The position numbers and the translations under genes were made by a program. DNA of 63,071 nt, filler included, from Choristocarpus tenellus KU-1152 (lineage: Eukaryota > Protista > Phaeophyceae), in the NCBI GenBank assembly GCA_964200185.2. It is 12 parts of 12 records of this genome, joined end to end, with 100 filler letters (N's around TTAATTAATTAA, not from the genome) between each part and the next. Parts side by side here need not be neighbours in the genome. Positions count along the whole stretch, not along the records: positions 39,816 to 51,986 come from CAXNAD020001939.1; 11 more parts are not named here. One strand, given 5' to 3'. The notes beneath the pieces were generated by a model that worked only from the letters and a program-made list of their open reading frames with translations, made no database searches and was not told the origin of the DNA. Shown piece after piece: positions 38,195 to 53,800 of the stretch. How positions within the stretch are numbered: position 1 is the stretch's first letter; each line of letters opens with the position of its first letter.

Positions 38195-39955
38195 GAATCG
38201 AGCAATGAGAGGGTTGGGTGTGCATAGGGGTGCCCTTCCAGAAATGATGAGTTGTGTGGAGGAGGAGAATTGCAGGTCGTCATGGTCGGGCAAGGGACTC
38301 TTCAACCTCCTTGCGATTTGTCGTCTTTGTATTGATTCGTGTCAGTTACGTGTCTTTTGTGCCTTTTTCCGATCGTGAAGGGTTAGGGATGATGAGTTTT
38401 GCCTACGGTTTGTTTCCGGATGGTTAGGTATATGGGTTGGCCTTGCTTGCTGTGCAGGCTGCTGCTGATAGGGTGAGACAAGGTTGGGAGGGGAGGTGAG
38501 GATGCCTTTTGGGGGGAGGGGGGGGAGGGGGGCGTTTTTTTGTTTGTGGCAGCTTCTGCTGGCATTAAAATTTTTCGAATGTGTGCAAGAAAGTGTTGAT
38601 GACATTTTTTTTGGAAGTGCATGTACTGTCGTTGGGGGTACCTAACGTGACATTTATTTCCAAGTTGGCAGTCTGCCCAAGAATGGGCCCCTGTTTAAGC
38701 GCTGTTGAGAACCGCATTTGGGAATTGTATAGTGTCAATTTCATCTTGGTGGCTTGTGGTCCTTGGAAAGAAAAACAAAATGGTATATGGGGGAGTGGGG
38801 GAGGGGGTAGGGGTTGTTGTTGTGGTATTTATGCCGTGGGGGGTGCAGTGGATGGCTTGGTAGTTCGTTTCCTAGGGAATGTCTACGTTTGAAGGCGGTG
38901 TAGACAAGACCATAGAATCAATCGCTTGTTGTAGGTCATCGCCCAGAGAGAAGAGAGCAGCCCGCCAATAAGTGGCCAAGGCTGACACCCCTTTGTGCGA
39001 CAAAATGGTAGTGAATGCATGTACGATGTTTTGTGCTTACACATATCTCCAGCAGAGGAGTACTGTATATAGTACATATATATATACTCGGCGACTTTCT
39101 GTTTGTTTAAGTCTATGTCCTGTCCCTTGGTTAAATGATGATGTGCCTTCCCGTGATTTTGTTTTCTGTGTCTATTTGTCTTGACTGCTCTTGCCATGGG
39201 TGAGGGGAGGGCATAGCCAATCAGATGCCACTCGATTTGTTCTATAGATAAGCCTAAGTACGGGTGGAGATGAAAGGAAACAAGGGAAACGCTAGGTGAA
39301 GAGAGAGAGAGAGAGATAGTTGATGATTTGTTTGTAAGCTACTGGTGTGATTGGACTGACTGGGAAATGGACCCATCACCTTACCTGCTTACTTGACCGT
39401 ACCCTCTCTGCTTTCCGTACGTTTACGTGTACCCTATTTGGGACTTTGATGCTGCTCTCTTTCTCGTGAGTGCAGTCATCTCCCTCATTTTGTATGCAAC
39501 AATGATAATGATGACCTTCATTGCGGTCACAAAACAAGCAACAAGGAGATGAGTTTAAGGAACGAGGCTATAATACCCTCGCATGTTGTGAACCTAACCA
39601 TGCCAAAAAACAGCCGATCACCAAAATTGAGGATGGAGGATGAGTTTGACCCAAAATGAGTCTCGGAAAGTGCCCATATGTTTTTTTTTGTAAAGGTTGC
39701 GGCACTTTTGAAGGGNNNNNNNNNNNNNNNNNNNNNNNNNNNNNNNNNNNNNNNNNNNNTTAATTAATTAANNNNNNNNNNNNNNNNNNNNNNNNNNNNN
39801 NNNNNNNNNNNNNNNTTCCCCTGACACATGTGCAAAATGTCAGAGGGCATAATAATATAATATATAAAATAACACTATATTTCATGTTATGAGATAACGT
39901 GTTTTACGTTAAAATGACAACGCATGTATGTATGAATGTTTAACAAAAGAGTGTT

Positions 39956-40082
39956 AACAGCCGATTTCAAAAATTGAGGATGGAGCTTTTCATTGAGGAT
40001 GGACTTGACCCAAAATTGACTGGGATAAAGTGTAGATATGTTTTTTGTTTTAAATGAATCTCAATTTTTGAAATCGGCTGTT
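39956..40082. mobile_element. 127-bp mini-MITE with perfect 23-bp TIRs
   Basis: AACAGCCGATTTCAAAAATTGAG / CTCAATTTTTGAAATCGGCTGTT, with TGTT on both flanks. Diverged relative at ~39608-39690. Confidence 0.75.
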
Positions 40083-40392
40083 TGTTAGGTATTTTAGCTC
40101 GGAGTGTTCCATGGAAAACATAGTGTTGTGTTCGTTTTGGAAAGGAGTGCCGCAGATATAACATAGTGTTGCACATGTTGTTATATCCAGTGTTATGCAC
40201 AAAACACAGTGTTGAATGTTATGTTATCTAAAGTGAAATATAATGAGCAAAAACAGAGAGAACAGAAGCCTTATCTTCTCCACCAAAACCTACAAAACTA
40301 AACCTACAACTTGACTTGAGCAGATATGACACGGCTGCTTGAATGAAGCTTTAGCGGTATAAAGGAATCAAATTCACTGTAGTAGTGCCTCG

Positions 40393-43300
40393 ATGAAACC
40401 TGCGAGCATTGTGGTGACCCTTGCAGTCAGCACAAAGGTTGCAGGATGGTAAGTTCAGTCGCATTTTCCCTCATGATCACCTCTTGCGCATCCTCCAATA
40501 ACTGCAACTTGCTCACCACCTTCTCACATCTTACCTTCAGGAGCACCTCTCATTCCTTTGGAACATCCGCAAAACAATTTTTGGTGGGATGTCGATCGCC
40601 AGCCCACCTCAACGTTGCAATGTCTTCGCATGCACCTTGGGTGGGCCACGAATGTAGCAGACACCGCTCGTTCCCACAAGGTGGGTGGGGGTTGGCTAAA
40701 CCCAAAGCACGGTTTGAAAACCTGGTGTCGGAGGCATTGAAGGATGGGCCTTCGCCGATGTCAGAAAGTGAAGACTTGGTTGAGGACCCTCGCCCTTATC
40801 CGAAAGTCGGCGATATCGTACGATACGATGGCAAGTGGGAAGATGATGTGACCCTCGGGGAGGTGGGTGGCAAGATATAGCACGATGACCCTTAGTGGTC
40901 TCCACAATCATCTCACAGTGTTACCTACATATAAGGAACAGCTTCATGCTGACGCCAAGATTGTGCTGGAAGTATACAACATTCAAGCTTGAACAAAAGA
41001 CCATGGTGTGTGTGCTGTAGGAAATGTTCAGTGTTCACAACGCTCATTTTTATGTTCATCATCTACCTCCACAGTTAGTATGAAATGAAGATGCCGCCAT
41101 AACGCAACCAAATATATCTGATAAATTGAAAGGAATAGATGTGTTTTTTAAACCTATCCCCGTCTTGAGGCGAAGCATTACGCGAAGAAGTTTATTCCCC
41201 TCAACGAAGCTGCCTCAGCCTTCTCGACTGCTTTTCATTCTTCAACAACAAATCATCTCCCTCTCTCACAATTATACAAATACAGATACGTCAATTGCAG
41301 TTTGTGGAGCAAACGGGAAAGTGGAGAGCCTATGTGCTTCCACTCAAAGAGATTGGCGAGGTGCAGTGTGCGATTTCTTAACCTTTATGGGATGAATAAA
41401 TTGATTGCATTTGGTAATTCTGAAGGGCAATCATTGCTGTAGTGGGATCCAACACTAGTTCCTCTGTTTGATCTTCTTTTGAGCATGAGCTAATATCAGA
41501 AAGATTGCGTACATTGTGCATACACAGGACCAATATGCACGGAAGAAGGGTCGCAGATCAGCTGCAGAGGATGCCGAGAAGCTGAGGTAAGAGAGAGCAC
41601 TACACACTGGTGTGGAGCAAATGTACTGTGACTTAAGGGACTGCTGTAGCATGCACTTGTCGATGTGCATTGATTTGGCACTGTCATCCTCAACCCCCCC
41701 CCCCTCAAATGCCATCATGTGTGTTCCCCATGTTGCAGGCCAGTTCGAGCATTCTATGTGAGGAGTGTCGATGGATTTAAGGTCAGTAAGGCATTATGAA
41801 GCCATTGTACTGTGGTCTCTGGTTGGTGTTGACCTTGATCTCATGTTGTCAATACACACTATGAACGCCATTTTCTATTCAGGTTATGACAGACAGTGAA
41901 ACAGGGGAGCCAAGGTACATCAGTGACGGCTACAAGCTGGATGACTTCCAGCTCCCTGTGAGTACACTTGAGCACCACTATCGATTATACTGTGCACAAT
42001 GTTCTCTTCCACAATACCCAAAAACGTGCGGGCTAAAAGTATGTATTAAGTGTATGCCATGAATATAAAGTGTTTATATAGTGTGATTTTGTGATAACAA
42101 GAAAAACAAAGAAGGTGATAGCACGCCCTGCCAATGTTTTAAAATCCCTTGTTACTTCTTTACCTCTCACTTTGGCATACGAGAGTGAAGTAGGCAGGCA
42201 GTCGGGCAACAGATCACCCCAGAAGGAATGTGGTCGAGGAGAGAGGATAGCGCTGAGGATCTAATTTTTTGCGCCTTGACTATTGCTTTGTCTCAGATTT
42301 GGGCTGGGTATGGGTACCACTCGGAGGAAGGGTTGAGAAATTTTCCTTGATACATAGAGATGAGGTTGTATGGATCCAATGGCGAAGTAGGCAAAGTAGG
42401 CAAAGTGGGGGGGGACTGCCTGCATATAGAGGTCATGGCATACACCACATTTGTGACTTTGAATAAGTCACATCTTGAAAGATACAGTGTTAGGAGCTGT
42501 CAGGATGCAAGCAGGGAAATGGGTAAAACGGGTACCATAGGATGGCGTTGACTCAAGCACCTCCTGGTCTTAGAATCTCTTTTAGTTGGGGGTTGAACTC
42601 AGGCAAGCAAAGAAATCTGTGTTTTGACTACTGCACCTGGTTCCACAACCTATTTGATTCAACTTGAACCTACAATGGACAACACAAAATTGAGGCTAGT
42701 TCCTACTACATAAGTTAACCAAAGTAAGTGGCCTTGTGTGAGTATTGCTATATTGATAGAGCTGCACAGAGATCATGGGGTGGGAAAAAGCTTGTTAAAT
42801 CCTGGACCGAGGAAGAGATGAAAGGGTGCCCAAGAGGGCCTCATCTCAGGTTGCAATCACAAGACCCTGGTGGGAGCAACTGTTTTGCATCTGATCCCTT
42901 GCACGGAGCATGCCCTTAAGTTAGGGTCTCTACTGTGTAGCTACTATCCTTGGACACTAGGGGAAATTGTCCTGACTGAACTTGAATGCATAGAGGACAA
43001 GAGATGACCCCGGAAATCTGCAGCTTTAGTAAATGAAAGTGCAGTGTTGCTATGTCCTTGGTTACTTAGTAACTGGAAGTCACAGTAAAGTTCAAGCTGT
43101 GTTGCCTTGACAGTTTGCTCAATGTTAGCTAGTCAAAACGAAATATGGATCATGTACATTGGGTGGGTGATGTTCTGTACAGGTACCTGTCATTGATCCT
43201 GCCAAGGCTGCTGTTGATCTGAAAAGCTACGAAGACCTGAAGAGTAGGATTCTGTGGGATGCTGTCAATTTTGGTGCTGTCGGCTCTATCTTAACTTTTC

Positions 43301-45252
43301 TGGTGAGTGGTAGGTGAATTCGAACCTGTGACCTTCAATTGACCATATGAATTTGTTTCCCCTGCAGTGTGACGTCTCGCTCGCTCTTCTCAAAGCCAGA
43401 CCAGCAATAGAGCCAGTCCCCATAGATTTATTGTCATGTCTCACCTGGGAATACCTGAAGGTAGAGAGGTACATGGTTGTTGAAATCTACACACTTTGGC
43501 TTGGTCCATATATTGACAGTCTTTATTTCTGTGTTCCCTCTGTGAAATTGTGCACCACATTTGAAGATATGAGCTGTATGGATTTTGGTGCATATCTTAG
43601 GCTTGTGCAACCTGTCTGATCGTTTTTGTGCCTCACCTCACCTTGTATTTGTGTTGTGATTTGGCTGGGGGCGTGGGCCTGGGTGGGGGATTTCATTAGG
43701 TTGCTGGCACAGACCTTGGCTTGCTCTTTGCCTTTGGTTCACTTGCAGCTGTCAGTTACGTTATTTTACTGGAAAAGAATGCTGATGACGTGGCAAGTGG
43801 CAACCAGGGCAATCTCTCCAAGCTTCGAGGTGATACAAGGTTTTTGATGCCTGTGCTTCTCATCTTGTCAGTGGCACTCAAGAACTACATTACCCACCCT
43901 GAGACAGTGCAATTTCTTAGTCTCGTACCCAAGAACCAGTTTGCTGCCGCCATGCTTGGGTTTGTGGCTCCTTCTCGACTCCCCTTATTATACCGTGAGA
44001 TCAAGGGTTCTATAAAGGGTGAAGAGCTCCTGGACATGGTGCCCGGCTCAGTTGGTCAGGGGAAGAAGATTCTAGAGGATCTCAGGGGCTCTGATGCAAA
44101 GGGGTTCCTTGAATCAACCTCACCATCCAACAACAAAAAGGTTATTGTTGTGTCTGGTCCAAAGGGCCTTGGTAAGACAACTCTTGTGCAGAAGATGTTG
44201 GAAGAGGATTCACGTCTTTCTGCACCATTGTGGTGCACATCAAGACCCCAGAAGCAGGGGGAGATCGATGGGGAAACATTCCAGTTTCTCGAGCCCATCA
44301 AGTTTGAAGAAGTGCAAAGGGTGGGAGGGTTCCTGGAAACATTCCAGGACAGAAATGGGGAGTCGTATGGCCTGCGAAAATCGGACATCCTGTCTGTGTC
44401 TAAAGAGGGCAAGGTGAGTGCAATGCTTGGTCTTGAGCTCATGTAAAAGGCATGTTTCTTAGGAAATGGGTTGATGAGCATTACCTAGTACTGTTGTGCT
44501 CTAACTAACACAGTGACTTAATGAGAGTTGTGGGGTTTGAAGAAAAAAGCTTGAGAACCAGAAGGGATAATATACAAAGAATCAGACCAAAATAGAGTGG
44601 TGCCTCTTTCTTGTCAAGCCTACCTCAATTATTTTTCCTTTTTTGTAACGCTCCACATCAATCATACTTTGCATATAATGCAACTCCTCTCATCCCTTTG
44701 GTATTGACTTGTTTAATCTTGAAAGACACATAATACTGCTGACAATCGATCTCACTCCTTTTTATTCCCACACTCTACAATTCAACAAAAATAGAAACTT
44801 TGAGACACAAGATTGTTTTACTGGTACTGCTATTATCACACCCAATACTCCAACACTAGCTGCATCCTCTGATTTGAGCAGCTTGCGCATTCAAAACACT
44901 CACTAATCCACACTTCCCCTGCATAACTCTTTTCCCAAAGGCTTGCATTATTGATGCAGACACATCACTTGCTGGGAAGCTTATGGGGGTGGATGACGTA
45001 ACTCTTGTAGGTGTTTGGGTGAGCTTGGATAATATGCCTGCCCTAGAAAAGAGGGTGAGGATAGTACTTGCCGCAAGTGGGGCTCAAGAGGGAGAGGAGT
45101 TTGAAACTGAGGTACGGGGACGGATAAGGCAGGCAATCAGCGACATCCAGTTTGGTGTGACAAGCAAAATATTTGAGTTTACTGCCATCAACCATGACAT
45201 TGAAGAGTCACTCATCACTTTGCGCAAGGCTGTCAATTACACCCTGGAATAA
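40393..45252 (+). CDS. 591-aa putative plastid membrane protein: CGL160/Atp1(UncI)-like module fused to a guanylate-kinase-like domain
   Basis: Nine phase-consistent GT-AG exons: 40393-40448, 40541-40862, 41286-41360, 41528-41586, 41739-41781, 41883-41957, 43183-43302, 43700-44413, 44941-45252 (1776 nt). GK motifs VSGPKGLGKTTL, TSRP..GEIDG, FLE..YG, IIDAD, INHD. Hydrophobic module YEDLK...SYVILL...D...RFLMPVLL...AMLGF. Confidence 0.85.
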
Positions 45253-46763
45253 TAGCACAGTACAGCTGCACATCAACACATGGTTCTTAATCCCCTCTGG
45301 TAGTATATGAGCTAGAGGTCCTTACTAACTTTAGGGGAGGTTTTATGTTCTGCATTAGGTTTAGTTGTAGTACATGAGGTTACATAAGGCTAGCAAACTT
45401 TTATTTTACTATACCATATCTTCCCCTGCGAGACAGGTCAACAAGACACCAATTGCTCTTTACATATCATGGGGTGCAAAATGTCACCCCCCTTCGAGTC
45501 ACTGTATGTGTGTAACCTGCAATGATTTTGTCCAGGAGAAATCCTATTCTTGCTTTAATGACTTCGGCTAATAATAATAATACAAGAGTGACTTCCAGAT
45601 ACGAAGTTTCAATATTTTTGATTGGCCTATTTGGGTGCCAGGAGCTTCATGTTCTGCCGAGTATTATTCGATTAACTCCCAATTGAGGCAGTGCACATTC
45701 TGTGTAGATTACATACATGTATGTATCAATACTCTCACAAGAGACGACATAATCAAGGAATTCATTGGTAGTATTCACAGCAGTACCACAGGAAGAAGAG
45801 GAACTCACAATGCACACAGATTTGAGTCAATGTTCAACTTCGGGGGTTTTTTGCCTTCCAATTTCACTTTCTGTATCTACTGGTCATAAATAAGCATGCT
45901 CAAGTTTTTTTTATTGACTGACGTGGTGCTTTTTTTGGTGAATCATTCAAACCCTTGAGTCGCTCCTTTTGTTTCAAGTGTAACACATGTTGTTCTTGAG
46001 GCATGGACTATGAGTTTGAAATATTATACAGAAGGGCAAAATGTATTCTTGCACTCCCAGTGTCGATGTCCCTTATTCTGCTCAGCTCTCACTTCCACTG
46101 ACCAGTGAGAAGGTTCACAATCCATTGTGTGCTTGAATGATGTGCATCATCAGAAACATTGGTAATAGTATACGTAAGAATTGTAGTATAGATTGTTATC
46201 TCTTTATTTATTCCACAATGCAATACAATACTCACATGATGCCTTTCTCTACTCAAAATAATTCATACCTTGATGGTGAGAGCAAATTTGTTGTTGAAGT
46301 ATGTGATATCCTTCAACCCGTTTCCTTACAAGAATATGACCTTACCTCATCCTCCTATCATATAAGTTGGTTTGCATTTTCACCAGAACTAGGGTTTTAC
46401 AATATTTCTGCAAAGTACTCTGGTGTATTCTGAAGCGAGGGCTAGTATGTACAGGTATATTACTGAGAAATAAATCAATTGCCATATTAATTGGTAGTAG
46501 CTTCTGCACTGTTAATAAAGTCTGTGCATCACAAGGGATTATTTATGATTTTGATAGAGTCCAAGCCAAGGATGTGATAGGACCCCTGCATCACGCCATT
46601 GATACAGGAAAGTGTGAAAGAAAGATTCCCACAATACGAACCAGAGCATGTGTGATAAGTCACAGATGAGAGTCATATTAGTGTTAGTAGCAGCAACAAT
46701 GCCTTCCACAACTATGACCTGTCCCTTCAGAACTCCCAGTACTCCTAGCCCAATGCTTTGCCC

Positions 46764-49700
46764 TTAGAAATTGGGTGTTGCCTCCAAGATCATCTCCTCT
46801 TTGGGGGGCAGGATAGTGATCACATCTGAGAGAGGGATCTTGGGACCCTCCTTTCCCTGTTGCAAAAGGACAACGAATAAATTTGTCAGAGTCATGACTC
46901 AGGACTTGTTTAGAAAACAAAACCGGTGCTATGAGTTCAAAGAAAGATCTTGCACATAAAATACTTACAAAACTATTTATCATATTTTTTTTCAAAGTTC
47001 AATGAACTGAACACAAGTGTGCGTTGTGTGAGGTGGTGGTGAGGGAATACCATAGTTTGTAGGTGTTAGCAGGCATTCAAGTAAATTGTCAAGCGTACAA
47101 ATATTCAAAGTTGAAAAGAAAGGAGAATATCAACTACAATCACGCTTGCTCTTTACCAAAAAATGAATCAGGTTAATAGATCACTACAACTCCCTACTTT
47201 AATAAAAAAGCAAATTGTAGATTTATGAACAAGATCAAAAACAAAGAGGGTTGGATTTGGTCCTTTCAAGCTTCAAGGAATTTTTGAAACTTTTGCAACA
47301 CACACCATGCTCACACCTAAAATACAGGTCACTACCCTTGGGGATGTGTGGCAGAATGTTAAACTGAAAACACATTTTTGGTCAAAAGCACACTCCATAG
47401 CACTCAATACACATGTATGACAAGACAGAGGTAGGCACCCTTGAAACCCAGCAACACTCTGTTCCGCACTATCACTTCAAGAATCATTTACACTGCAATA
47501 CTGCTTACAAAGAGTGGGGCATCGAAGACTCTTAAGGTTAGGAAAATACAGATAAAAATTTCAATTCAACTAGTCAGACAGTGTGGTGTGGAGTTGAATT
47601 GGCATTGTGCTAGCACAAAAACTTCATGTCTGGAGAAATAATAACTGTGTATGAGAAATCATGAGATTTTATCTTAATGGTTGAGGACACACAGCAGTGT
47701 AGAATAGTCAACTGTTGCAGAGTGCTTCCATTTGTTTCAGACATAGATGTAACTCGAGCAAGGGATACTGTCATATTTGTGCAAATTACTCTATTGTGTT
47801 TAGCTAAACTTACTGTGGGGTCATGGGGAAGCATGATGGATACTGTCACACCAAGAACACCCTGACGCATCATGACGTGGCGAACAGCACGGTCAACATA
47901 ATCTGACAAAAAGAAAAACAAAAAGAGTTGCAGGAAACAAGATGGTCAATGGTCACGTCAGAAGGCAGTCAAACCAAGGAACAATAAGGGTACAGTTAGT
48001 ACAATCTTAAAAAGCACCCCCCAACAAACATCATGTGGTTCATGCATTCAACACACAAACACCAACAAACTGGTAGAAGAAGTGAGGGTTTCCTTCCAAG
48101 AAAGACCTGACTTTGACAAATGGTAATCAAGGAGAGAGGTACTAGACCCTCTCATATATCACAGTGAAACCCACCTCTTCTGATTTGAACAAATTGAGCA
48201 CCAGAGGACTTGAAAGGGTACAAGTTTATCAGAAGAGGATAAGAAGTCATATACCATCATAAGAAAAAGACCAGCTCCCTCAATCAATGATGCATGTGTT
48301 TAGATGATCACTAGAAAAATTCAACCCTCCACACTCACAAGAGATCCACCAATAGTACTCACCCTCCCTCACACGACCACTCTTGATCATGTAGCCATCA
48401 CGGAACTTCATGGCTTTGGCACGCTGCGCCCTGAGCTTGCCTGCCACAATTACCTTGACATAGAAATATTGGGGAACAAATATTGGGTGCTGAAGGAATA
48501 AAAACATTTTGAATGCTAGTATTAATAGCCATCACCACATCACACTTAATGTGCTAGATAATTGTAACTTCAACCATACAGCTAGCTCCCCCCTCTCTTA
48601 TCCACTTAAAAATATCATAAGAAATGTAAAATTCACATTCAAGTACTTCTATCCGAGGGTTGTCTAAAAGATCACACAGTTCAGAGCAACATGACTTACA
48701 CAATGACAACGAACATGGAGCATATACCCACATAGCCAGATGCAGCAACTTTTTTTTAGGTTGCTTTGATTGTTTTTCTAGAAAGAGAAGACGAAAACTC
48801 AAACGGAGCTCTTCTCAATTTACCCTTTCACAAAAAGAAACACTTGCTAAATTTGAATTTGAGAACCCCTGTTCTACCCCCCAAATATCAAAGAAAAAAA
48901 TGAGTTACATCTACAAAAAAAACAGGATTTCTTATTTTGCATCTACAAGTAGATCATATGAAAGTCAATGGTTAGAAGAATTTCCAATATCCTCCAGATA
49001 TATATCCTGGATCGCAAAGAGGATACAAAATGAGAGCAAAAAACCCTACCTCAGCACCCTTCGCGCCTGATTCCATGATGAAGCGCAGCACACCATAGCA
49101 CGCACGACGCACAGCTAGTCCACCAAGGAGTTTGTACTTGAGAGATTCTGCCTGCAGATATTGAAAGTACCACAACACAAGAGCAGGCAGTACAGAGATA
49201 TCAACACTACCTTCATTTTTTTCATTTTCAAGTTGATGAAGGCAGGGAATTGATGTAAGAAAGCACAAAGAATTAGTAGCAAGGAGACAGACCAAAGGGT
49301 GTGCAGCACCCCAGCCTCCCAATGGATAACTGTCATACATTTATGGTCGTATCAATCAATATGGAAGGAAACAGGTACATTGAGTTGAGTTGGTCACAAA
49401 GCTGAGGTAACACAGGTCAAGTACACATAATACATGGTTTCAGGAAATTCACACAGCATCCACATTGTAGGCTAAATTGAAGTCATATTTTCGGGTGTAC
49501 AGGGACACACCCCTACCTGTGACATCTTGTACATTGCAGAGACATTATGAAATTCTCTACATCAAAGGAAGCTCTAGAATAAATCCTGTAAAGCAACAAT
49601 CTAAATAGTGATGTACATCTAACTACACAGCATGGCATGGTCTGATCCACCACCTCATGCATCACTCATACGATAAAGCAGATATATAGCAGTCATATAC

Positions 49701-50863
49701 CAGAAATCAAAACTCTTTTATATCCACAAGTGTACCTCAGTCCGTAATTGATACAGATCCATCGTGTGAAAAAATTGACCCCTTCAAACACCAATCAAAC
49801 AGAAACGATTGGAATGCTCTCCGACACATCCGACCGCCAATAATAACTATCTAATCAGTTTACAGATGTCCCCGCAAGATCTGCTCCCACAATGCGCCAC
49901 AATTGTTGTACGGTTAACCTTGACCAAGAGACGCGAAAGTCAGTAGGATCATAATTGGAAGATGAACAGTATAATGAGTTGAATTCCTAAAACAATGCTT
50001 TCACTTGCATTGAATAACTGCTCTTTACTCCATTTGCGGTAGATAAAGTACTGAGAACTCCCATGTATCCCAAACCACGCCTATTCAATTCTGTCAGCAT
50101 AAATGACCAGAACAGCAACTACCGAGAAAACCACCACTTCCAAAATATTTATCACCGTATTCCCTTGTATCACAGTTTGCGGTTCGTTAACTTCTTTCAT
50201 TGTTTTTGTCATCTCAAGCTGACCACTTATGGAACGTTTGTCCTGCAAAATACAACGATGCCCACCTGGGTCTGCGCGCAGAGTCCACGCTTGGCAACCC
50301 GCTCAGCGTAGAGCTCAACAGCTCCATCTGGAAAGCTGAATCTGTAACGTATCAGAAAACGGGTAAGGAAAGTGAACTCTCGTGACCATCCAGCACCCTA
50401 CGCCTGTCCAACCAAGGTCGCTGAGCCCTGTTGAGTCTTTTAAAAGCACCCAAAAGCGCACAACTTATTATCAACAGAAACCTCGATATGATACTACTTT
50501 GTCCATATCCCGCAAGTTTTTCGTGAGGAAGCCTTGACCTACCTCTTCTGCACAACAGAAGTTAGTTCCCTGATGCGCTGACCCTTCTCACCCAGCACGT
50601 TCTGGGGTCGGGTGGCGCTGATTATGATCTCCGTGCGGAGGGGAGTGACACGGACCTCAACACCAGCGTAACCTTCTTCCGCAAGTTCCTGGGTAAGGAG
50701 CTGCGCAGCACAGGAGTAAATGATATCAGCAGTGCATCAAATGCAGGAAAAGATGCTTGTTAAGGTTGTGGAGGTGGTCGGGTAAGACATTTACCTCGTT
50801 CAGCTCAGCATAAAACACTCCATCGGCCACAAACTTGCGCTTCTTGCTCATGTTGGTAGTCAT
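46764..50863 (-). CDS. RPS3: 40S ribosomal protein S3 (uS3), complete, 225 aa
   Basis: Exons 50863-50795, 50700-50543, 50341-50266, 49151-49050, 48453-48363, 47902-47814, 46856-46764 (678 nt, all GT-AG). Motifs [47 protein letters not shown]. Confidence 0.98.
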
Positions 50864-53800
50864 GTTGACCACGCCCCGTCGTCAGACACGGGCTTTACAA
50901 GGGAGACCAGGGGCTGGGACTCTGTGCTACCCCGATGAAGCCAACACCACAAAACCATAAACAAAATGTATGTTATTTTTTTTATTCCTTTTATTTTTTA
51001 TGGACCTTCGTTTTCTTGAAGTATACAGTATATAAAGGTTTGTTTCCTTGACGGTCACATCCTCTGATCTCCTAATAACATCGCTAAACATGGACGTCTC
51101 TCTTAGTTTACAAGGTGAACCAGTGCTCAAGTGTCTCGTGTCAGACTTATGGAGTGTCATTTGGCACTTATCGCAATCAACTGGTACACAATCTACAACT
51201 ACGAACGATCGCCACGGTCATCGATGACCCTGCCCCAAAAACATATCTAAGCAAGGATGACTTTCACCCCACCAAATTCGACAACAAATCTTCACCACTC
51301 CAGATTGTTGAACCAAAATTTCAACCTACCTAATCAAATATTTGATACATTTTAACCTATAGCCTCGCAACCACCTGTTAAAAAATTGCTTTGAGCTCTC
51401 ACACAAAAAAGGTACGTTTACTAGTTACGGTTCAAAACTATAGCGAGCCAAACCATTTGCGAGGCAGGCAGGTTTCAACCCTTTTGCATTGTAAACCATC
51501 TTCTTTCCCGTACAATGCACTCAATTTCATTGCTTTATGCGCATAATGGTGTACACAAATTTTGATTTTCCCCCTTTCCACACACAAGGTCGCACCACAA
51601 TTAATCCAAGGTTCTTTCCGTAAGGAAAAAAAGTATGTGTTTTTGTCCTTTCTTGGGATCCTTGGAATCCAACCCTCTCTACCTCTCAATGGTTTGGCTA
51701 AGTATTGAGCTTTAAATTCCAATCTACTTCACCCCCTCACTTCCTACCTATTAGTTCCATCACGAAGAAGGGTTATACCCCCAAGGTTGCAAAATGATGA
51801 TCTAAATCAGTATATTACCCGAGAATTTAATCAATACTGTGTAATGGTAGAGGAGGTTTGTGTCAGTCTCTGATTTTCTTCATCTCATGGATATTAGGCC
51901 TCCAACGTTTTTGTTTGGGCTCAAAGTATCTGGGAGGGGGTAGCGGCTGTCCAATTGGGGTCAATTTTTTCATGTCACGATTTTTGNNNNNNNNNNNNNN
52001 NNNNNNNNNNNNNNNNNNNNNNNNNNNNNNTTAATTAATTAANNNNNNNNNNNNNNNNNNNNNNNNNNNNNNNNNNNNNNNNNNNNTCTCGACATGAAAA
52101 AATTGACCCCCAAATGGACAGCCGCTACCCCCTCCCAGATACTTTGAGCCTCTCTCCTCGTGATGTTTATGTACATGTGTTCATGGTCCGCTAGTGGAGT
52201 CAAGTGTCTGGAGCAGACCTCATACGTTGAAATAGATGCCAAATTGAATTTCGCAGGTGCCTCGCCTCCTAGTTCATTGCTATCAACTATGGCCTCTTTT
52301 TTGGGGTGGGAACCATTGCTCGATAACAAATCTCCATCATACAAACAGGTCATCTAGAAGCACTTGATGCAAGGAGACAGGGGCCATTGTGCAGAAAGTG
52401 CTAGTGGAGGTCCAACCGAATAAGGGCCAACTTAACAAAATTGGCAGTAGAATAGTGACGATCCCCCAAGAAGAAAGGAAAAATATAAAAATCATAACCT
52501 GACTTGCCATCAAATCATGTGTTGTACTAATATTGCAATGAGAAGCCATGCCAACTTCACCTACGTCACAACCCTCTTCGACCCACCCCACCCCATCTCT
52601 TCTCTCCTCTTTTCTTTGCACTTGGGATCACCTCTCCACTCCACCAATACACACGGATGGGGTGCTGCTATCGGATCCAGGACAAGAAGGTAGCTGTGGG
52701 TGGAGGGGATGCTTCCATCCGTGTCATTGACATTGTTGAAGAGAAGATCGATGACCACTATTGACGCTGGAGTCTTCAAATTGTACAGAGGTACAGAAGA
52801 GAGTACAGGATACTGCGTTCAAGTACTTTTTAGTACTATTTTGCAATGCTCTATAGTGGGAGCCTATCATTGACAATACCTTCCGTGCCTTTGTACTTTT
52901 GGGGTGTTTAAGTGCAGACAGCAGAGTGCAAAATTTGGCTGGGGTTGTGGGCTGGAGTGGCCCCCCTGGCTGAAAGGTATCACAAGGAGTATTTTATTGT
53001 ACAGGGGTGGCACGCTCACCTGGTCACTGTGATGTTGGTAGTTGTAGACAGGGCGATGTTGTCTAGAACGTTTTTGGATTTTGTGTGAGAGTAGGTGTCA
53101 CAGAATATGACCAACTGACAGAAACTAGAGTTGCTGGAGCATAAGTTATTATGTTTGTTTTTCGAGAAACTTCCTCTATATATGGATGATGAATTTTCAC
53201 TAGGAATGGTGCATGAGGCTGATGAAACAGTTCGGGGTCGACCAATAATATACCATGTAATTTGTTGTAGGGTCCTTTTTTTGTTTCGATCATACAAAAA
53301 TTCTGTGGGGGTTTCACTAGAATATTCACCTGATGAGCTTGGCAATCGCTTGAAATGTACTAAACCTCAGGAGGTGACCAAATCAAACCACACACAAGGG
53401 TGTTGTACTTACTTTCAATAGCCTATCCGCCTTCTTTCTATACATGAACAAAAACACAGAATGAGGGAAAGACAAGAAACACCACTACTAATCTCACTGA
53501 GCCTCCCTCTGGTACCACAGACCCTGTTTCTATAGGCATCATACTCAATGTTGCAGACGTTGAATGAAGGGACTACAGTAGAACTGATCCTCCTACAACA
53601 TATTGTGAAAAAAGAGAATAACTGCAGGTACCAAGAGGAGACAATGCTTGCACCGTTTTGGATATCAAGATCGATGCTATCTTGTCCACGGACTCAACAG
53701 TACATCATATTTCCTCCCTGTTTGCTGGTGTGCACAAAATGCACTTGTCTTTGAACGAGGAACTCTGGTAAAAATGTGCCACTACATGAATCATCTCCTG

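Follow-up and report, generated by a model that had tools for sequence, protein, structure and literature searches.

A CGL160/Atp1-type membrane module fused to a guanylate-kinase-fold domain in the brown alga Choristocarpus tenellus and its red-lineage relatives

Atp1 and CGL160 act in the assembly of the CFo c-ring of the ATP synthase, and the N-terminal domain of plant CGL160 (Arabidopsis At2g31040) recruits CF1. CGL160 was named as 'conserved only in the green lineage', and studies of chloroplast CFo assembly have, to our knowledge, been confined to plants and cyanobacteria. Its N-terminal domain, CGL160N, was called green-lineage-specific by Reiter et al. Here, we describe a gene of the early-branching brown alga Choristocarpus tenellus KU-1152 whose product shares the Pfam family CGL160_C, and with it a four-helix module, with plant CGL160 and cyanobacterial and bacterial Atp1 (UncI). 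Atp1 is the membrane module alone, whereas in the Choristocarpus protein this module is preceded by a Tudor/SH3-like barrel and followed, at the C-terminus, by a domain with the fold of guanylate kinase (GK). The gene is located on the plus strand at positions 40393-45252 of the stretch of DNA that was analysed (the window: 63,071 nucleotides, made of 12 joined parts of assembly GCA_964200185.2), within the part that covers positions 39816-51986. Red algae, as well as diatoms, kelps, pelagophytes and eustigmatophytes, have their own version of CGL160 with two different soluble domains. A first reading of this DNA, made from the sequence alone and here called the sequence-only reading, had proposed a fused gene with a clean nine-exon frame, to be checked against RNA junctions and by a survey for the same fusion.

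Three-frame translation of the locus gave an uninterrupted frame of 591 codons in nine exons, and all eight introns are of the GT..AG type. The translated model is identical to a public protein (P0151, 591 aa, listed at NCBI as 'unnamed protein product [Choristocarpus tenellus]'), in which the exon translations occur as exact, ordered and gap-free substrings. All eight exon joints were present at their predicted positions in spliced contigs of the public run X3, where depth was 100-215 in exons versus 7-22 in introns. The record of X3 carries no RNA label, yet the run behaves as a transcriptome of the same organism, being spliced and having exon-biased depth. Another public run, X1, contains the stretch as one genomic contig of identical sequence and may be the assembly from which it came. 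The gene is transcribed and spliced as modelled, and the proposed frame was borne out both by the public protein and at all eight RNA junctions.

The sequence-only reading had placed the membrane module and the GK P-loop in the same exon (43700-44413, exon 8), and both Pfam families indeed match the translation of this exon alone. Guanylate_kin is found at exon residues 146-238 (E-value of 9.6e-11) and CGL160_C at exon residues 5-69 (E-value of 1.8e-5, 25.6 bits), the latter falling below threshold only because the initial 40 positions of the profile are encoded by exon 7. Exon 8 alone also matches solved guanylate kinases at an E-value of about 1e-8. Since both modules are encoded by exon 8, the fusion is independent of any splice. 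An annotation or assembly artefact, merging two neighbouring genes, can practically be dismissed: one stop-free exon holds both modules, a single RNA-derived X3 contig covers this exon with the flanking joints seen, and the same architecture recurs in dozens of independent genomes and transcriptomes. This rules out an artefactual gene fusion, and the fusion of a CGL160/Atp1-type module to a GK-fold domain is confirmed.

The assignment of the membrane module to CGL160/Atp1, made by eye in the sequence-only reading, was upheld by profile and model alike. The full protein reached 43.0 bits against CGL160_C (PF24763; cut-off 34.2 bits, E-value of 7.3e-11, residues 218-319). Four hydrophobic cores were delimited by hydropathy (residues 233-251, 256-274, 298-316 and 322-340), and four long helices were predicted by AlphaFold2 (residues 216-252, 254-283, 288-315 and 328-355). 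The full-length AlphaFold2 model was built on a family alignment of 68 sequences and has a mean predicted local distance difference test score (pLDDT) of 79; between residues 211 and 350, every ten-residue block has a pLDDT of at least 80, and roughly half of the blocks exceed 90. Y226, G263 and G337 are invariant columns of the family and D279 and R297 are nearly so. Together with L229, K230, Y270, L274 and P301, which also belong to the invariant or near-invariant columns, they correspond to the motif pattern that had been recognised by eye. No solved structure matched the membrane module by sequence, the best hit being to unrelated proteins with an E-value of 1.4. A language-model look-alike search with the membrane part returned CGL160_C clusters at 0.81-0.83, a consistent lead only, as these values are under the trust level of the tool.

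Lysine and arginine counts along the flanks and loops of the module (3/0/4/1/3) place both termini on the same side of the membrane as the second loop. The N-terminus of plant CGL160 was found to be stromal by protease protection (PMC9806626). Given this and the four-helix homology, both soluble domains of the Choristocarpus protein would therefore face the stroma. We infer that the topology, with stromal termini, is the same as in CGL160 and Atp1, and the protein probably does the same job at the CFo c-ring, judging from its homology to them.

The C-terminal domain has the complete GK fold, in line with what had been claimed for it. The full protein scored 59.3 bits against Guanylate_kin (PF00625; cut-off 25.2 bits), covering profile positions 2-179 of 182, and Foldseek matched the modelled domain to human and yeast GK with an E-value of 2e-15, a TM score of 0.79 by target and approximately 23% identity. 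The matches 9j8l, 8pts and 1gky range in E-value from 2e-15 to 3e-14 and in TM score from 0.74 to 0.80 by target. Canonical GKs (yeast Guk1, human GUK1, bacterial Gmk and plant plastid GKpm) share with this domain the complete fold, the P-loop and several active-site residues. Unlike them, it is tethered to a membrane protein, has four contacts to guanosine monophosphate (GMP) replaced, has lost the LID arginine and scores below the cut-off of the equivalog model for the enzyme.

To compare individual sites, the GK parts of 55 family representatives were aligned with ten ordinary GKs. Yeast residues S34, R38, R41, E44, Y50, E69, Y78, S/T80 and D100 are those that we take to be the GMP contacts, following the yeast GK-GMP structure; their numbering was checked against yeast GK alignments. 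At yeast positions S34, R38, R41, Y50, E69, Y78, S80 and D100, the Choristocarpus protein has W, R, K, F, E, Y, L and D, so that four of the eight are replaced: S34W (W428), R41K (K435), Y50F (F444) and T80L (L475). The LID motif RG(T/S)E is gone, with an eight-residue insertion and a non-arginine stretch in place of the LID arginine.

When 1.84 billion cluster representatives were searched exhaustively with exon 8 (HMMER), 52 proteins were identified at an E-value of 1e-10 or below, many of them 450-640 aa long with both modules matched in one stretch. The three-part architecture of N-terminal domain, membrane module and GK was present in 41 of the first 179 proteins retrieved by a single-sequence search and in 76 of the 317 retrieved by a profile search; at the level of clusters (50% identity), over 40 have it. 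The survey that had been proposed thus recovered the same fusion across ochrophytes and in red algae. Its members include brown algae (Discosporangium, Laminaria, Ectocarpus and Hapterophycus), Phaeothamnion, Chrysoparadoxa, the xanthophyte Tribonema, the eustigmatophytes Nannochloropsis/Microchloropsis, the pelagophytes Pelagophyceae sp. CCMP2097 and Aureoumbra, diatoms (Fistulifera, Amphora, Seminavis, Epithemia, Mayamaea, Fragilaria and Cyclotella) and the red algae Compsopogon, Rhodosorus and Pyropia. In a tree of the N-terminal domain and membrane columns, a red-algal grade stands against a clade of ochrophyte lineages, and the Choristocarpus protein falls among the brown algae.

Members of the family carry automatic database names, such as 'CGL160/ATPI domain-containing protein', 'Guanylate kinase-like domain-containing protein', 'guanylate kinase' and 'P-loop containing nucleoside triphosphate hydrolase protein'. 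A description of the fusion was not found among papers on CGL160, nor did the protein turn up in papers that were searched for guanylate kinase in connection with plastids, thylakoids, ppGpp, Cyanidioschyzon or red algae in general. The sequence-only reading had known of no description of the architecture. This stands for the papers that were searched but not for public protein sets, where the architecture is widespread under automatic names.

Two further domain arrangements were seen among the retrieved proteins. P0419, a 780 aa protein from a Bacillariaceae sp. metagenome-assembled genome, is listed with a protein-kinase domain (PF00069) besides CGL160_C, which may reflect either an additional fusion or two genes merged in the gene call. 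In five diatom proteins of 590-635 aa (P0279, P0309, P0285, P0304 and P0291), a canonical GK is the only Pfam match, without CGL160_C; this GK shares approximately 50% identity with the GK part of the red algae, and the remainder amounts to approximately 400 residues.

The GK part differs strongly between the two sides of the family. Ordinary GKs keep the P-loop lysine followed by Ser/Thr, the GMP contacts and the LID motif. Likewise, all 15 members of the red grade keep K14, S34, R38, R41, E44, Y50, E69, Y78, T80 and D100 as well as the LID motif RG(T/S)E, and the GK domain of Compsopogon matches yeast GK with an E-value of 1e-60. The red-algal members thus have a canonical GK, unlike Choristocarpus. 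Position 34 is S or T in nine of the ten canonical GKs (A in one) and S in 22/22 red-type members. By contrast, it is W in 21 of the 31 ochrophyte representatives. Every brown alga and pelagophyte has this W, as does the eustigmatophyte, with none in the P0071 group (0/3) or P0009/P0010 (0/2) and 3/8 in the diatom clade. At position 80, canonical and red-type members invariably have T or S, and 27/31 ochrophyte representatives have L, the others having I or Y. Positions 41, 50 and 69 vary or are deleted in ochrophytes, where the LID arginine is lost and an insertion stands in its place. The P-loop lysine, followed by S/T, is kept in six of six brown algae and five of five pelagophytes; R, A or T replaces it in Tribonema, Phaeothamnion, Chrysoparadoxa and most members of the diatom clade.

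The same gradient is visible in the scores against TIGR03263, the NCBIfam equivalog model for guanylate kinase (cut-off 160.45 bits). Rhodosorus reached 212.5 bits, Compsopogon 211 and Pyropia 149, while the Choristocarpus protein scored 82.0, Ectocarpus 72, Tribonema 62, a pelagophyte 29 and a diatom gave no match. The automatic name 'guanylate kinase' on ochrophyte members is probably wrong as an enzyme assignment. The family offers a natural graded series, from canonical GK in red algae to unrecognisable in diatoms, in which the change from enzyme to non-catalytic module can be followed. A three-residue insertion before the last strand is common to red-type and ochrophyte GK parts and absent from ordinary GKs, which fits one ancestral fusion.

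A clade of seven members around P0025 keeps nearly all catalytic and GMP-binding positions; on TIGR03263, P0249 scored 169 bits and P0025 150. These sequences may come from haptophytes or cryptophytes, in which case the decay of the GK domain would be specific to ochrophytes. P0025, P0242, P0244, P0245, P0249, P0254 and P0057 have signal peptides followed by F/W/L, the pattern of algae with complex plastids, and yet a near-canonical GK.

The GK-like domain is nevertheless conserved in the brown algae. Identity among them is 49-57% for this domain versus 16-23% for the presequence, so the domain must still serve some purpose; it appears to be under purifying selection. Still, the substitutions and scores suggest that the brown-alga domain is probably no longer a guanylate kinase. 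The linker between the membrane module and the GK-like domain is 33% identical to that of Ectocarpus and 33-51% identical among brown algae. A separate canonical GK of approximately 305 aa with a hydrophobic N-terminal extension was found in Pylaiella littoralis (P0273) and Discosporangium mesarthrocarpum (P0275). This protein may be the real plastid GK of brown algae, and its presence could have released the fused copy from catalytic constraint. In P0273, the hydrophobic stretch ends ...AYA/W, the slash here and below marking the predicted cleavage site.

A comparable transition is known from animals' membrane-associated guanylate kinases (MAGUKs), as the GK-like domains of PSD-95/Dlg, CASK and MPP are non-catalytic binding modules derived from GK enzymes. 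MAGUKs have lost the P-loop and bind phosphopeptides, whereas Choristocarpus and the other brown-alga proteins keep the P-loop. Compared with wild-type yeast GK, PDB entry 4f4j carries a Ser to Pro change (FSVS/PSTTR) four residues before R38, and is titled 'Conversion of the enzyme guanylate kinase into a mitotic spindle orienting protein by a single mutation that inhibits GMP-induced closing'. W428 lies four residues before R432 and thus at the same position. Of the MAGUK-type changes, the hinge serine is replaced in Choristocarpus (W428), and the P-loop, intact here, is lost only in other ochrophyte lineages. The ochrophyte domain may therefore be seen as a parallel to the enzyme-to-binding-module switch of MAGUKs, as an analogy and not as proof. 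The GK-derived module of this family arose independently of MAGUKs, in plastid-bearing algae.

The N-terminal presequence appears to be of the bipartite, plastid-targeting type. Residues 1-98 are disordered in the AlphaFold2 model (pLDDT below 50), and identity to brown-alga orthologues is 16-23% here versus 49-80% for the domains. Ochrophyte orthologues share a hydrophobic, signal-peptide-like stretch that ends in A/G/S and is directly followed by F/W/Y, for example ...KVAG/W in Choristocarpus, ...TAA/W in Ectocarpus, ...VTA/F in Tribonema and ...SFS/F in an MMETSP transcript. The tryptophan that the sequence-only reading had put at the likely +1 position, ahead of an S/T/R-rich stretch, accordingly recurs as F/W/Y at the predicted +1 site of orthologues. 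Red-algal members have transit-peptide-like N-termini without a signal peptide, and Phe is within the first few residues of most that were examined. The presence versus absence of a signal peptide is the contrast expected between complex and primary red plastids. A plastid location is supported comparatively, by this pattern as read from the presequences themselves and by its conservation in orthologues.

The N-terminal domain is kept from red algae to brown algae. Modelled alone with AlphaFold2 (53 sequences), it folds into eight strands with a pLDDT of 88 and a predicted template modelling score (pTM) of 0.80. No Pfam family matched residues 1-215. Fold searches in the PDB (Foldseek), among 48,161 VIA-align representatives and in the ESM Atlas returned only generic SH3, Tudor, BAH, chromo and KOW barrels, with VIA Z-scores of at most 6.4 (the caution level of the tool is 8) and Foldseek E-values of 0.08 or worse. 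The best ESM Atlas match was a diatom cluster, probably of the same family. We do not claim a specific structural relative for this domain, as the matches were generic only.

Considering these results, we favour, with a probability of roughly 0.6, that the gene is the brown-alga orthologue of a red-lineage counterpart of CGL160/Atp1, encoding a plastid CFo assembly factor with a GK-derived, non-catalytic stromal domain. The protein would be inserted in the thylakoid membrane, its two soluble domains both projecting into the stroma, and its membrane module would contribute to c-ring assembly in CFo in the manner of Atp1 and CGL160. The fusion may date from the red-algal ancestor or earlier, its GK being active at first, and would have reached ochrophytes with the red plastid. 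There, the GK domain would have lost its guanylate-kinase activity while staying under selection as a structural or binding module. Its intact P-loop possibly still binds an adenine nucleotide, and the domain may dock a stromal partner such as CF1, a task that falls to the unrelated N-terminal domain in plant CGL160. A more far-reaching version is doubtful as a whole: in red algae, a c-ring factor with an active, thylakoid-tethered GK would link guanine nucleotides, and possibly ppGpp, to the ATP synthase, and in ochrophytes the domain would have become a binding module, through a hinge-serine change as in MAGUKs, with a CF1-recruiting role. If true, this would be a case of independent and datable enzyme-to-scaffold evolution inside an organelle.

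Several observations weigh against the favoured reading. The Choristocarpus domain keeps the P-loop and R432 (R38), E438 (E44), E463 (E69), Y473 (Y78) and D495 (D100); it is the least degenerate of the brown-alga copies, so that weak GK or another nucleotide-dependent activity would be possible. The arrangement of the domains relative to each other is unreliable in the AlphaFold2 model (pTM 0.42), and the fold matches of the N-terminal domain are generic, with Z-scores below the caution level of 8. In addition, the plastid localisation and the ATP-synthase role of the red-lineage family are drawn from homology to CGL160/Atp1 alone. Finally, the root of the tree was placed on the red algae by choice, and the three named red-algal rows are not on one side of a branch. 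The order 'active first, decayed later' is consequently an argument from parsimony, together with the established derivation of ochrophyte plastids from red algae.

The closest rival is that the domain is still an enzyme with a changed substrate, either a P-loop ATPase or a non-GMP kinase, perhaps acting on assembly. The P-loop lysine followed by S/T in every brown-alga and pelagophyte representative is consistent with this, as is the apparent purifying selection on the domain, and pelagophytes keep the lysine even though most of the GMP loop is absent. Against it, R, A or T replaces the lysine in diatom-clade, xanthophyte, Phaeothamnion and Chrysoparadoxa members, so catalysis shared across ochrophytes is unlikely, and the LID arginines of nucleoside-monophosphate kinases are missing. 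Overall, we regard a changed substrate as unlikely. We think it quite improbable that the brown-alga domain is an active GK, possibly inhibited by ppGpp, that ties ATP-synthase assembly to the plastid guanine-nucleotide pool. It does pass the Pfam threshold with the whole fold present and retains the P-loop and the five residues listed above; furthermore, ppGpp inhibits plant chloroplast GK in the passage of PMC10107265 that cites Nomura 2014. Yet the four replaced GMP contacts, the missing LID arginine motif and a score of 82 against a cut-off of 160.45 bits speak against such activity, and brown algae have a separate canonical GK. The P-loop lysine itself is lost in sister lineages, which argues that selection is not keeping catalysis. 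The coupling to guanine-nucleotide or ppGpp status that the sequence-only reading had suggested hence fares poorly at these sites. Such sensing is unlikely for the brown-alga protein and reasonable for its red-algal relatives, whose canonical GK domains, such as that of Compsopogon, make an active enzyme plausible.

It is very unlikely, in our view, that the membrane module does no more than tether a plastid GK or GK-like protein to the thylakoid or the envelope, unrelated to the ATP synthase. This would accord with soluble domains that differ entirely from plant CGL160N (no shared N-terminal family in Pfam) and with an ATP-synthase role that, for red-lineage members, is suggested by homology. 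However, the columns that define CGL160_C are the most conserved in the protein, which argues for a specific membrane function and not a passive anchor. The features of the gene are collected in Table 1.

Table 1. Features of the Choristocarpus tenellus CGL160-GK gene. Positions count along the window; residue numbers refer to the 591 aa protein.
Feature	Position	Strand	Description and basis
Whole coding sequence	40393..45252	+	9 exons, 591 codons + stop; frame analysis, P0151 identity, X3 joints
Exons 1-5	40393-40448, 40541-40862, 41286-41360, 41528-41586, 41739-41781	+	frame analysis
Exons 6-9	41883-41957, 43183-43302, 43700-44413, 44941-45249 (stop 45250-45252)	+	frame analysis
Presequence, aa 1-98	40393..40778	+	short hydrophobic start ...KVAG, then W, then S/T/R/H-rich stretch
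N-terminal soluble domain, aa 99-215	40779..43197	+	all-beta SH3/Tudor-like barrel; exons 2-7; AlphaFold2
CGL160/Atp1 (UncI)-type membrane module, aa 216-352	43198..44005	+	end of exon 7 + start of exon 8; Pfam, AlphaFold2
Linker between membrane module and GK-like domain, aa 353-395	44006..44134	+	inside exon 8; pLDDT 39-59
GK-fold domain, aa 396-591	44135..45249	+	exon 8 (44135-44413) + exon 9 (44941-45249)
P-loop GPKGLGKT, G403-T410	44156..44179	+	intact (GxxGxGK[ST]); read from sequence
W428	44231..44233	+	yeast Ser34 position (R38 minus 4), guanine-contact/hinge serine; site table
L475	44372..44374	+	yeast Ser80 position, guanine contact; site table

Other elements were seen in and around the gene. 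Intron 4 contains a run of ten C (41695-41704). A perfect 23-nt inverted repeat, with arms at 39956-39978 and 40060-40082 that are 81 nt apart, lies approximately 310-440 nt upstream of the start codon, and could be a small hairpin-forming element or one resembling a miniature inverted-repeat transposable element (MITE) in the promoter region. Downstream, at 47610-49340 on the minus strand of the window, three open reading frame pieces match positions 2-32, 30-57 and 59-83 of the Pfam profile Ribosomal_S3_C. This is a multi-exon gene for the cytosolic ribosomal protein uS3, convergent (tail-to-tail) with the CGL160-GK gene.

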